Below are positions 58,473 through 63,770 of a stretch of DNA of 64,000 bases, one piece after another. Source of the stretch: Auanema rhodensis (Eukaryota; Animalia; Nematoda); the NCBI GenBank assembly GCA_964057225.1, contig OZ059897.1:15438001-15502000 (forward strand), read 5' to 3'. A program made the position numbers and the translations under genes. Below the pieces are notes generated by a model, which did no database searches, had not been told where the DNA came from, and was given only the letters and a program-made list of their open reading frames with translations. How positions within the stretch are numbered: the stretch's first letter is position 1; each line of letters begins with the position of its first letter.

Positions 58473-59502
58473 TTATTTATTAGGATAAGCAGCAATGATA
58501 CTCCTGAAAACATTCAAGATAATGAGAGCTATATTAACGAAAATAAAAGTTATCGATATGAAAATACTCACTTATTAATCTTGAAACCACCACAATCACG
58601 AATTTGGGAAGCGAATTGTTTTCTATCGGGCTTCTTCCATCCTCCGAATGGCTTGAAATCATTGAAGTCAGCAGGAGATGCTCCATTCACTCCATCTCCA
58701 TTGTTACTTATATACCTTCAGAGAAAAATATTGTTTAAAGATATATGGATATTATGCTAACCACAGCTTGTCACCTTGAGTTGAATAAGAGGTTGTTCCT
58801 CCAGTGATCGTATTGAAATCTTTAGCACTTGTATAGAATCCAACTTTAACACCTTTGATCTTGAATATGAAAATGAGCTAGAAGACTGAAAACATTAGTA
58901 ATACCATAGCAGCAGATCTAATATCATTAATCAAATTATTATTCACGGTAACATTTGTATTCCATTGAGAAGGTTCAGCAATCTAAATATAATTACATTT
59001 ATGGAAATTAAAATGAATATTATAACAATACCTTGAACCAAATAAATCTCAATCGGATTCCCAATGAACTCATATAGTTATAGAAAGTATCAAATTGAGT
59101 TATACCGCCAAAGAAATCACTGAGAACAGGAGAATAGTAAAATTCAACTTGAAGATTAGCTGTAAAACAAAATTATAAAGAAAAAATAGCACATAGTTAA
59201 TTTTACCCATAGCAGCAGCTTTGGTATTGAAGTATAGCTGATAATCAGTTGAGCCAGTCATATTAGTTATTGGTTCATTTGCCCTAGAAAATCAAAAAGA
59301 TTGAAACGAATATCTTCTTACAATCAAACCTGAACACGGCAGTTGCAAATGAATTGTCTTCAACTCCAAAGCATTGAAGTTGAGTAATATCAATATGTAT
59401 TGTTTCAAAGTCCAAAGCATAAAGATATCCACGAGGGGCAAGGCTGTACACATTAGCTAATGTTACAGTAACAGTACAGAAGAGAATAGCCAAGCGAAAC
59501 AT
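58473..59502 (-). CDS. Nematode protist-type (GH25-like) lysozyme, copy A, 7 exons
   Basis: Signal peptide MFRLAILFCTVTVTLA, YALDF, FIWFKI, VGFYTSAKDF, LWYISNNG, DFNDFKPFGGWKKPDRKQF...CGG.KIN; intact spliced ORF. Confidence 0.88.
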
Positions 59503-59874
59503 TTCTGAAAATAAAAAATTAGTTTTGAAGGGAAAAGTCAATTGGGATAACCCTCACTTGTACTGAGAGTTTATAAAGCTTTTCCTTATCATTTGATAAG
59601 TATTTCGATAATATTGATAAAAATTTTAATCTTTTTACATTTTATCTTCACGAATGACGATATATTCGAACTTTGATTTATTTCTCGTCTAGAAAACAGG
59701 GTGTGGTCCATGTTTCCAAGAAGCTCGTATTACCGTATACAAGAAGAAGAAATTGTGAAAATTGGTAAGCTCCGCCCCTTTTTTCAAATTCAAATAATTC
59801 AAATTTGAAATATATGAACAACCGTTAATACATCTAAAAAATTTAAAAATAAACATTTGAATGAACATGATAAT
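59470..59874 (-). repeat. Left arm of 405-bp inverted repeat
   Basis: Reverse complement of 60220-60624 with no indels; only 2 mismatches seen (codon 2 TTT vs TAC). Confidence 0.95.
59565..59620 (-). promoter_or_regulatory. TATA-like box plus paired GATA (ELT-2-type TGATAA) sites, present upstream of all three lysozymes
   Basis: CTTATCA-TT-TGATAAG inverted GATA pair at 59585-59600, TGATAA at 59615, TATAAA near 59570; copies at about 60474-60529 and 63862-63915. Confidence 0.65.
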
Positions 59875-60041
59875 GAAAAATAAGGAATAGTCTTGTTCCT
59901 TACATGTTCAAAGACTTGATAGAATAAATAAAATAATTTTTTTCTGTTTCTTCTTTTCAATTTGTAATTTTACAAAAAAAACAAAACAAATAAAATATTT
60001 GAAATAGTATTAAAAACATATATACTATACATATATAATAT

Positions 60042-60118
60042 ATAAATAGTATATATATATATATATATATATAAATAGTATATATATATATATATATAAA
60101 TAGTATATATATATATAT
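60042..60118 (+). repeat. (TA)n-rich minisatellite, three AAATAG(TA)n units, in the spacer of the inverted repeat
   Basis: aaatagtatatata... repeated three times with variable TA count. Confidence 0.85.
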
Positions 60119-60219
60119 TATAATATCTTATTAATAAATTTATAATTAATATTTATATTTTATGAATAATAATTCAAACAAAATCTCTGTGACTTCACAT
60201 TTTTTAAAAATAAAATTTT

Positions 60220-60624
60220 ATTATCATGTTCATTCAAATGTTTATTTTTAAATTTTTTAGATGTATTAACGGTTGTTCATATATTTCAAATTTGAATTAT
60301 TTGAATTTGAAAAAAGGGGCGGAGCTTACCAATTTTCACAATTTCTTCTTCTTGTATACGGTAATACGAGCTTCTTGGAAACATGGACCACACCCTGTTT
60401 TCTAGACGAGAAATAAATCAAAGTTCGAATATATCGTCATTCGTGAAGATAAAATGTAAAAAGATTAAAATTTTTATCAATATTATCGAAATACTTATCA
60501 AATGATAAGGAAAAGCTTTATAAACTCTCAGTACAAGTGAGGGTTATCCCAATTGACTTTTCCCTTCAAAACTAATTTTTTATTTTCAGAAATGTACCGC
60601 TTGGCTATTCTCTTCTGTACTGTT
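60220..60624 (+). repeat. Right arm of 405-bp inverted repeat
   Basis: Mirror of 59470-59874 (paired coordinates sum to 120094 at both ends and at the two ATGs). Confidence 0.95.
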
Positions 60625-61639
60625 TATACTGTTTTAGCCAACCCCATTGTGGTTAAAGAGCAAGATGCTTCAGCTGTTTGTTTCTGAAAAAAATATTTAA
60701 AACTAATTTTTAATTTTTATTAGAATTACCAATATGGTTTTGCTACTCGATTTCCTTTAAATGTATCTTCTATGTCTTGTCTAGCTGAAAGTGGATTCGA
60801 TGTTGTATTCGCAAGGTTAGACATCTCTTATAAATATTCTCGTATATGTTCTTAACATCAGAGTTAATATTCCTAGTCAAGGAGTATTCGATGCTAATGC
60901 GATCACAACTATCCGATCGGCTTATTCAGGTATTACCTCGTCTTAAACTTTGTTTTCAAAATGTTTTATAATTATAGCTGGAATTCCAACTGAAGCCTAT
61001 GTTGAACCATTAATATTCATTAATCATACTAATATACTTCCAAATATTTTCAAAGGATTGAAGAACAATGGTGTTAAACTCAGATCTATTTGGATAAGGG
61101 TTTGTCTAGAATAAGAAAACATATTTCAATAATATGCCACATTAAGGTTACTATTGATATAGCATGGTCTGGTATGATTGATAGAAATGTGAAGCTTTTG
61201 TCTGATATGAAAAACTATGCTAAAGTTTGGAAAAGATCTTGCGGGCTTTATGAAATATTGTTTAATTTAGGCTCAAGGTGTTCAAGTTGGATTCATTACT
61301 AACAAATTTATTTGGGAGCATGTTACTGATAATACTCAAGTATTTGCTAGTGATCGTCTTTGGTATACAAACACAATCGCCACTGGATCAATTGGTGAAA
61401 CTTCTACTAATTTCGATGATTTTGAAAGTTTCGGTGGATGGGTATCTCCAGTTATTAAGGAGTTTGCGGTTGCCGAGAAAATTTGTGGACACAACCTCAA
61501 CAGGTTTAAAATAACAAAAATGCATATATAGTTAAATATAATTATAATAATATTTAGAATTGTCTATAAAGGAGATTCTGCAACTCTTAATATTGCAAAG
61601 ACCAATGAAGAACTGACTATTGGTGGAAACTTTCATTAA
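60592..61639 (+). CDS. Nematode protist-type (GH25-like) lysozyme, copy B, 7 exons
   Basis: MYRLAILFCTVYTVLANP, MSCLAESGFDVVFAR, GIPTEAYVEP, SIWIRVT, LWYTN...GETSTNFDDFESFGGWVSPVIKEF...CGHNLN, tail LTIGGNFH*. Confidence 0.88.
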
Positions 61640-61909: not shown

Positions 61910-62430
61910 TTTAATTCAAGAGATTTTGCAATAAATTTTCTATTTCTTGCTTACTCTCAAACTCTTTATTCTTCAAAGAGTGTTCCAAAGGCCTGAATAC
62001 ATGGTATTCAGTTGAAGATAGGTCTGGAGAATATAGTCAATGCTCCAAAACATCACAACCAAATTTATCCAGCTTCTCTCTGATGGTACGGCTTACATGA
62101 GCACTTATCGCAACTCTCTTGAAACAGTTGAACTATGAACACTCAACTTTTCAGCTAGAAATTGCTGAGGAACCCCACAATCCTCTCTCAATTTCTCTCT
62201 AAATTACCTGCTCCCAGTTCTCTTTCTCTTTTTCTCATTTCGTCTTCTAAACTTCTTTCTCCTGTTCGAAATTTCTTAAACCATCTTGTGACTCTTGCAT
62301 ATCCTACAATGAAATTATTCTCTTCATTCATTTTCTTATGCGTTTCGTAAGCTGTAAATTCTTTTTCGTAAAAAATAGCAAAACATGCCTAACGTGGAAA
62401 CGCTTGTTAGATATTCTTTTTTGAAATTAA
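61910..62430 (-). mobile_element. Decayed, internally deleted mariner (Tc1/mariner) transposase remnant
   Basis: Minus-strand fragments HVRHVLLFF/YEKEFTAYETHKKM, RWFKKFRTGERSLED, LAEKLSVHSSTVSREL (HTH) and EH*LYSPDLSSTEYHVFRPLEHSL (YSPDL motif); stops, frameshifts, most of the catalytic core missing; no TIRs recognised. Confidence 0.85.
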
Positions 62431-62792: not shown

Positions 62793-63770
62793 TTATGGTG
62801 TGGCCTCATAGATACTTCTGAAATAGAATATGAAATTTCAATATATTCTAATATTTCTTACTTGTTTATATATATATCGCATTCCAGCATGTTGGAAGCG
62901 AATTGTTTTCTATTGGGCTTCTTCCATCCTCCGAATGGCTTGAAATCTTTGAAGTCAGCAGGAGATGCCAAATCAGCTCCATCTCCATTGTTACTTATAT
63001 ACCTTCAGAGAAAAATATTGTTTAAAGATATATGGATATTATGCTAACCAAAGATTGTCTGAAGCAAAACCAGCATAATTTCCGGTGATTTTTGTCCAAT
63101 AATTAGCACTAGTATAGAATCCAACTCTTACATTCTTGGCCTGTAAAAATACTTTGAAGTTTCGGAATCAAAAAGCATACTATACCATGGCAGCATCTCT
63201 AACATCCTTGAGAAGGTTAACATTACGCTGATAATCAGGGTACCAGTTAACCATAGGATCTACCTGTAATAATATCTTATTTAACTACATAAAAAGTAAT
63301 GTAAACCTTGATCCAGATGAATGTCAATTTGATTCCATTGGCCTTTAAGTTATTAAAGATACGATTGAACTGGGTAGTACCACTTAAACCAGTAGATATA
63401 AGAGGATACAGGTAAAACTCAGTTTCAAGTTCAGCTTAATAGTATGAATGATTGAATGAAAATGATTTTGATTATACCTTCACGGGCAGCGTGAACATTG
63501 AAAAACAACTTGACATCTATACTCTCTGTTCCATTCATGCCATTTATATCATTGACTCTAAAATGGATTTCATAAATAAAATTTAGTTTAAGATTCATAC
63601 AATGAAACAGAAGTTGAATAACTGTTATCTTGGTATCCCATACAAGAAAATACACTCCAGTTACCCCAAGGAATGAAGTCTACAGCATAAAGATATCCAG
63701 GAGGGGCAAGGCTGTACACATTAGCTAATGTTACAGTAACAGTACAGAAGAGAATAGCCAAGCGAAACAT
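62793..63770 (-). CDS. Nematode protist-type (GH25-like) lysozyme, copy C, 7 exons
   Basis: MFRLAILFCTVTVTLANVYSLAP, YAVDF, FIWIKVD, VGFYTSANYW, LWYISNNG, DFKDFKPFGGWKKPNRKQF; same intron positions as copy A; intact ORF. Confidence 0.88.

Follow-up and report, generated by a model that had tools for sequence, protein, structure and literature searches.

Identical Mirrored Promoters of Two Strongly Diverged Lysozyme-Like Genes in the Nematode Auanema rhodensis

The Locus and Its Inverted Repeat

The analysed stretch of DNA (hereafter, the window) comprises 64,000 nucleotides of the nematode Auanema rhodensis (assembly GCA_964057225.1, contig OZ059897.1, positions 15,438,001 to 15,502,000). Two lysozyme-like genes, A and B, lie head to head in this window, and an almost perfect inverted repeat covers the promoter, the 5' leader, and the first 11 codons of both. 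In a direct comparison, the two arms of the repeat (405 bp each) show no indels and are identical at 403/405 positions. Both mismatches are adjacent (60596-60597) and fall into codon 2, which is TTT in the left gene A and TAC in the right gene B, whereas upstream of the two start codons the arms are identical at 372/372 positions. The automated repeat finder reported 409-bp arms (59470-59878 and 60216-60624), the excess consisting of one mismatch and three chance matches. The preliminary description of this region, made from the letters alone, had listed the same arms with two mismatches around a 345-bp spacer containing (TA)n, which proved exact, and had assigned GATA sites, a TATA box, a TTTTCAG motif, and 11 codons to each arm, all of which are indeed present in both.

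Gene models of A and B were built from open segments and splice signals and were compared exon by exon. The six exons of A and the seven exons of B form open frames that are in phase and flanked by AG/GT at all junctions. Exons of A match paralogs from the same cluster, and its exons 5-6 also match nematode lysozymes. Beyond the arms, the identity of A and B falls: the introns are unalignable, and only 54 of 192 aligned residues (28%) coincide in the mature proteins. Non-coding similarity thus far exceeds coding similarity (372/372 upstream positions versus 28% of mature residues), as had been proposed initially. The accompanying claim of different intron positions holds for the private introns, one in A and two in B, and fails for four others, since introns 1-4 of A correspond to introns 2-5 of B both in aligned position and in phase (2, 1, 0, 0). 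Hence, A and B are old paralogs with a largely common structure.

No other inverted repeats of 150 bp or longer were found within the 64-kb window. The outer flanks of the arms are the continuing, homologous signal-peptide codons of A and B and contain no direct repeat; accordingly, no target-site duplication was found at the outer arm ends.

Conflicting Groupings of Promoters and Coding Regions

A and B belong to a cluster of six related genes, which was resolved by including the next 20 kb beyond the window (denoted L009); adding 64000 to an L009 position gives the coordinate in window numbering. All six genes are assigned to protist-type (GH25-like) lysozymes, and they are arranged in the order A (-), B (+), C (-), D (-), C' (+), and E (-), the models of C, D, and E being derived from open homologous segments. 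Another head-to-head pair is formed by D and C', with an intergenic region homologous to the A-B one. Coordinates of all features are given in Table 1.

For A, B, C, D, and C', the upstream sequence and the first exon were aligned in gene orientation, and sites were counted. Over the 166-bp proximal promoter, A and B are 100% identical, and either of them is 95.8% identical to D and 83.3% identical to C, while the identity of C and D is 88.3%. All informative sites of the proximal promoter (six substitutions and a 26-bp indel) group A with B and C with D, with zero sites in favor of the alternatives. From codon 2 onward, all 31 informative sites group A with C and B with D, and again the alternatives receive none. 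Hence, the histories of the promoters and the coding regions conflict, and the switch is located between -38 and codon 2.

Codon 2 follows the gene type, being TTT in A and C and TAC in B and D. Apart from this codon, all four genes (A to D) are identical from -38 to +33; the final 33 arm bases therefore represent family-wide conservation and lie outside the recent event. Estimated from these alignments, the copied tract would measure between about 334 and 375 bp and would end 5' of codon 2, whereas the preliminary description had placed its end within the signal peptide.

The arms of the A-B pair are more alike than either of them is to the arms of the paralogous D-C' pair, used here as a within-genome proxy. 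The chance of a 372/372 run is about 8e-21 at an identity of 88.3%, as between the arms of the sister pair, and about 1e-7 at 95.8%, as between B and D. Purifying selection acting only on the promoter is rejected as an explanation, as it can account neither for the 372/372 matches nor for a grouping at odds with that of the coding sequence.

The conflict between the groupings is best read as a hallmark of interlocus gene conversion, in which one mirrored 5' region is copied non-reciprocally onto the other. We consider it quite likely that the arms are identical since non-reciprocal recombination between inverted homologous sequences recently overwrote one of them with the other. The opposite groupings of promoters and coding regions, together with the confinement of the arm to the cluster, support the earlier suggestion of recent arm-to-arm conversion or promoter capture.

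Table 1. Features of the lysozyme-like gene cluster (window coordinates; positions in parentheses refer to L009)
Feature	Position	Strand	Remarks
Left arm	59470-59874	-	promoter, 5' leader, codons 1-11 of gene A
Right arm	60220-60624	+	promoter, 5' leader, codons 1-11 of gene B
Spacer	59875-60219		345 bp, unique, 12% G+C
A-side-specific part of spacer	59875-59916		left 42 bp; short hairpin inside
TA-rich tandem array in spacer	60018-60126		unit about 29 bp; self-folding
Distal block, B arm	60220-60410	+	GGGGCGG at -276, CCACACCC at -204; A-arm mirror 59684-59874
Four-GATA cluster, B arm	60447-60508	+	AGATAA, TTATCA, TTATCA, TGATAA; A-arm mirror 59586-59647
TATAAA of gene B	60519-60524	+	at -73; gene A mirror 59570-59575
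TTTTCAG splice-acceptor consensus	60583-60589	+	at -9, ending 2 bases 5' of ATG of B; A mirror 59505-59511
Gene A	58568-59502	-	A-type, lysozyme-like; exons 59502-59330, 59283-59207, 59159-59032, 58982-58905, 58859-58762, 58715-58568
Gene B	60592-61639	+	B-type, lysozyme-like; exons 60592-60675, 60724-60815, 60862-60929, 60978-61099, 61147-61224, 61271-61503, 61558-61639
Gene C	62861-63770	-	A-type; first 11 codons as in A
Gene D	64593-65623 (L009:593-1623)	-	B-type
Gene C'	66732-67641	+	copy of C
Gene E	about 69134-70245	-	own signal peptide and own promoter
2,986-bp inverted repeat, left arm	61505-64490		extends past window end
2,986-bp inverted repeat, partner	66015-68997 (L009:2015-4997)

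Direction of Copying and Ends of the Tract

The part of the arm most distant from the genes, a distal block of about 190 bp, adjoins both B-type genes, B and D, and is absent beside C and C'. Upstream of D, it is split from the proximal promoter by a 144-bp insertion. The proximal promoters of C and C' directly border a homolog of the A-side half of the spacer. Next to the distal block of the A arm come 42 bp of filler specific to this side, and only beyond them does homology to the C' upstream region resume. Taken together, the distribution of the block and the A-side junction suggest that copying probably proceeded from B to A; the proximal promoter of C, which is 83% similar to that of A, would then be the older version. 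As to the insertion itself (L009:1831-1974), it carries several further GATA cores, and A and B are without it.

The proximal end of the tract lies within the 71-bp block common to A, B, C, and D. At the distal end, homology is scant, and the tract was therefore probably produced by a one-ended homologous copy closed by microhomology, or by a template switch, rather than by two-ended conversion.

The following course of events is envisaged. Initially, A and B would have been old head-to-head lysozyme paralogs with mirrored 5' regulatory regions. The event would probably have started in the approximately 70 bp around the ATG that are common to the four genes. B-side sequence most likely replaced the older, C-like promoter of A and carried with it the distal block of about 190 bp, and the mirrored region would thereby have grown from about 190 bp to 405 bp. 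Divergence of both proteins and introns is too great for the coding bodies to have taken part, and they would therefore have stayed different.

Several points weigh against this interpretation. Firstly, the distal junction of the tract consists of three matching bases after one mismatch, and then of A-specific filler. Secondly, the direction of copying is a matter of parsimony over two paralogous pairs, and would be the opposite if C' had once been flanked by the distal block and had lost it. Thirdly, the evidence comes from one assembly of one genome, with the identity of the arms compared within this genome only. Finally, the many zero-substitution tracts in 10 kb could in part stem from consensus polishing that blurred the paralogs.

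Alternatively, the 405-bp mirror may date from the original inverted duplication and may have been kept by continual conversion, perhaps under selection; the D-C' pair would then have lost the distal block on its C' side, and its arms would have drifted. Zhao et al. argue for active upkeep of such structures over long times (PMC1803023), and in our case, the second head-to-head pair shows the same layout with mirrored proximal promoters that are 88-95% identical, while the block from -38 to +33 is identical in four genes. However, the arms of D-C' have been allowed to diverge, the distal block accompanies the two B-type genes but neither C nor C', and the junction on the A side holds the A-specific 42-bp filler. 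These three observations fit a derived A-side copy better. We regard such long-term maintenance of the entire mirror as improbable.

In the assembly, the spacer has a single orientation, matching that of the sister pair D-C'. This agreement provides no independent evidence against inversion of the spacer because the central 490 bp have recently been exchanged between the two pairs. Folding of the whole spacer yielded z = -4.5, with the TA array forming the longest predicted hairpin. Through this predicted hairpin, the array might start breaks; its position is away from both tract ends. With a 345-bp spacer, arms of such length are unlikely to extrude as a cruciform except in single-stranded intermediates of replication.

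Copies of the Arm in the Genome

A DNA search of the 181-Mb genome produced seven matches to the arm, all within 7 kb on one contig, and the copies apart from the pair itself are all partial and belong to the lysozyme cluster. The distal block of about 190 bp has four copies in the genome, all of them again in the cluster, as established by both DNA and protein searches. For this assembly, a dispersed mobile element is thus excluded. In particular, the arm is not a high-copy miniature inverted-repeat transposable element (MITE) found genome-wide, an origin that the preliminary description had named as contrary to its own proposal.

A single foldback or MITE-like element with terminal inverted repeats that by chance adjoin two genes would also account for long inverted repeats around an AT-rich center, which do resemble foldback elements, and a degraded mariner-like relic is situated 1.3 kb away. 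It is hardly credible, for four reasons: no copies exist outside the cluster in 181 Mb at the DNA or protein level; the arms hold the genes' own start and signal-peptide codons, in frame; no target-site duplication is present in the flanks; and the divergence between the homologous C and D promoters is of the ordinary kind.

Comparison of the region 59300-60800 with Rfam produced no match, and therefore no known RNA gene accounts for the conserved distal block. The block also contains a 43-codon open frame (59677-59805 on the plus strand, with the mirror at 60289-60417) that points away from the adjacent gene and has the appearance of an exon-like stretch between a splice-acceptor-like site and a GTAAGC donor-like site; no relatives of this frame were found elsewhere in the genome.

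Other Near-Identical Tracts in the Cluster

The A-B repeat is not isolated. Including this repeat, at least five near-identical tracts (0-1 substitutions), both direct and inverted, lie within 10 kb in the six-gene cluster with its second head-to-head pair, and the ends of these tracts are abrupt and lie in diverged sequence. Genes of the same type (A versus C and B versus D) are 98-100% identical over the first 100 coding bases, and for A and C, the stretch that follows is 86-100% identical. The middle exons of both comparisons have only 40-60% identity, which is the noise level for AT-rich DNA, and near-identity returns at the 3' ends, introns included, in the same way for both types. The interval 59917-60406 shows zero substitutions relative to the D-C' intergenic region, the changes being limited to the length of the TA array.

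The largest of these structures is a 2,986-bp inverted repeat that carries C and its mirror C' around D. Its arms are 99.87% identical (one substitution and two indels), and its left end coincides with the second base of the last intron of B. Judged from the distribution of the tracts, the 405-bp repeat appears as one of several outcomes of sequence exchange at a locus where any surviving homology is used and the diverged cores escape.

Two observations concern the 2,986-bp repeat itself. At its right end, beside E, there is an orphan copy of the last intron, last exon, and 3' flank of B (L009:4814-4997), 99.5% identical to the counterpart in D; the last exon of E itself is a different one, located at about L009:5134-5232. 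Inside the left arm lies the degraded relic of a mariner-like transposase (61914-62388, minus strand), with a weak Pfam match to HTH_48 (E=0.01, below the cut-off) and a C-terminal LYSPDL...EYHVF motif, which we take to be mariner-like.

The abundance of such tracts might be explained by a single complex replication-based rearrangement, i.e., by serial template switching among neighboring paralogs that made all identical tracts at once. It would agree with at least five tracts having 0-1 substitutions in 10 kb and abrupt ends, one of them at the second base of an intron, with the orphan copy of the last intron and exon of B, and with the microhomology and filler at the distal junction of the A arm. 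Still, we find it doubtful, as most tracts end where homology decays, which is predicted by homology-dependent exchange, and as the identities of the tracts differ (100%, 99.9%, 95.8%, and 88%), suggesting events of different ages. Like the long-term maintenance of the mirror, this rearrangement would be a form of non-allelic copying.

Several perfectly identical tracts in a small region could also be a product of over-polishing of paralogs, the arms having been collapsed or homogenized by consensus polishing with multi-mapped reads. However, the locus resides in a 23-Mb contig without N, where unique flanks and the unique spacer anchor both arms, and the type-specific codon 2 has been kept distinct amid otherwise identical sequence. 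Moreover, polishing cannot create the 26-bp indel, the 144-bp insertion, or the presence and absence of the 190-bp block relative to the sister pair. An artifact of assembly or polishing therefore seems very unlikely.

Promoter Elements and Family Assignment

Each arm contains four WGATAR sites at -145 to -89, compared with 0.34 expected from the frequency in the window. The TTTTCAG motif is putatively a trans-splice site, as suggested by general nematode biology, and the coding end of the arm is the start of a hydrophobic signal peptide. Each arm appears to be a complete promoter, with a GATA cluster, a TATA box, a short leader with TTTTCAG, the ATG, and the beginning of the signal peptide. 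In C. elegans, such GATA clusters act through ELT-2 to drive expression in the gut, and the lys genes are gut-expressed and pathogen-responsive. By analogy, A and B, which would now receive identical cis-regulatory input, should be co-regulated and expressed in the gut via GATA factors.

The cluster genes were assigned to the lysozyme family by a profile of the exon-6 region of five genes, which retrieved 361 proteins at E<=0.001; the top matches are nematode proteins, some of them named Lysozyme or GH25. In tblastn searches with the nematode lysozymes P0001 and P0010, exons 3-6 of gene B were aligned with E about 1e-14, and alignments of the same two proteins with B, D, and E extend over most of the protein length (E from 1e-14 to 1e-35). 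A and C match nematode lysozymes directly in the last exons only, and the remainder is linked to them via E. The closest protein relatives found are about 35-55% identical, and other lysozyme-like genes of the genome are far more distant.

Neither the six-frame search of the whole genome with the Pfam GH25 model nor the Pfam search with single exons of the cluster genes produced a match, and even full-length relatives score 20-27 bits against Glyco_hydro_25 (PF01183), for which the cut-off is 27. Short exons and the divergence of the family put the genes beyond the reach of Pfam, and membership was therefore taken from the profile search and from the named relatives.

In exon 2 of B (60724-60813), the N-terminal A-x-D motif has Ala where A, C, D, and E have Asp. 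Among five aligned nematode relatives, this column is occupied by Asp in four and by Glu in the fifth. By analogy with GH25 enzymes, the Asp may be an active-site residue, and B may be non-catalytic.

Comparison with Known Systems

Divergent paralog pairs with near-perfect inverted arms and a unique spacer were described in Caenorhabditis (Zhao, Chang, Varley, and Stormo, 2007; PMC1803023), e.g., the hsp-70 genes F44E5.4/F44E5.5 and CBG13231/CBG13232 of C. briggsae, and gene conversion was proposed for them. Caenorhabditis pairs duplicate as units, and in CBG13231/CBG13232, identity is confined to the 5' part, the rest having diverged (PMC1803023). The A-B pair resembles them in the head-to-head arrangement of paralogs, in the near-perfect arms that span the intergenic region and the coding start around a unique spacer, and in the duplication of the pair as a unit (A-B and D-C'). 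It differs in that A and B represent different old subtypes (28% identity), that the arms are almost wholly non-coding (372/405 bp), and that the mirrored arm seems to have grown by an extra 190-bp block. In addition, the family is that of immune or digestive lysozymes, unlike the heat-shock pair of hsp-70.

The hsp-16 locus of C. elegans is a perfect inverted duplication of a two-gene module with a spacer of about 415 bp (PMC1803023 and PMC3966223, both citing the original work of 1985). Both loci consist of identical inverted modules around a spacer, and in both, conversion rather than recent duplication serves as the explanation; at hsp-16, however, whole genes are identical, whereas in the A-B pair identity is restricted to the regulatory region and 11 codons.

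Outside nematodes, palindromes of the human Y chromosome maintain more than 99.9% identity by non-reciprocal arm-to-arm exchange, and their inverted orientation avoids deletions. Those palindromes span kilobases to megabases, contain whole genes, and reside on a non-recombining chromosome, whereas the A-B arms measure 0.4 kb. Conversion tracts that cover the 5' flank and first exons and have abrupt ends are known for the human fetal globin genes and for Attacin A/B of Drosophila; a simple-sequence repeat was proposed as a hot spot in globin, and Attacin, too, is an immune effector. In these two cases, the repeats are direct and the genes closely similar, whereas the A-B repeats are inverted, the coding regions are far more diverged, and the TA array lies off the tract boundary.

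Closest by protein family are the clusters of protist-type (Entamoeba-type, GH25-like) lys genes in Caenorhabditis, which are likewise clustered. In three Caenorhabditis species, lys-1 is oriented opposite to lys-2/lys-3 (Schulenburg and Boehnisch, 2008; PMC2383907), and no sign of concerted evolution was seen in these clusters (PMC2383907). In contrast, the cluster of A to E is strongly concerted, in the regulatory and terminal segments only. Thus, the process proposed for the A-B locus has already been described in nematodes, and the locus stands out by its coding divergence and by its almost purely regulatory tract.

It is possible, though we think it rather unlikely, that the cluster operates as a system of cassettes, in which a common 5' module (the promoter and the beginning of the signal peptide) and common 3' modules are kept identical by frequent short conversions, while the enzyme cores are selected to diverge. 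If so, the inverted geometry would make the conversions safe, a co-regulated repertoire of different lysozyme-like effectors would arise from one regulatory design, and promoter sharing would itself be selected and not be a by-product of proximity.

Non-reciprocal copying, the explanation that we favor, has consequences of its own. The neighboring paralogs A and B offer a very clean natural case of separate histories of regulatory and coding DNA, and promoter similarity is unusable for dating or pairing such genes. For assembly and annotation of immune-gene clusters, the locus is a warning. The pair is also a ready-made experiment on whether identical promoters give very different effectors identical expression. 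As for the family, nematode lysozyme clusters can undergo partial concerted evolution of a kind unseen in the Caenorhabditis survey.

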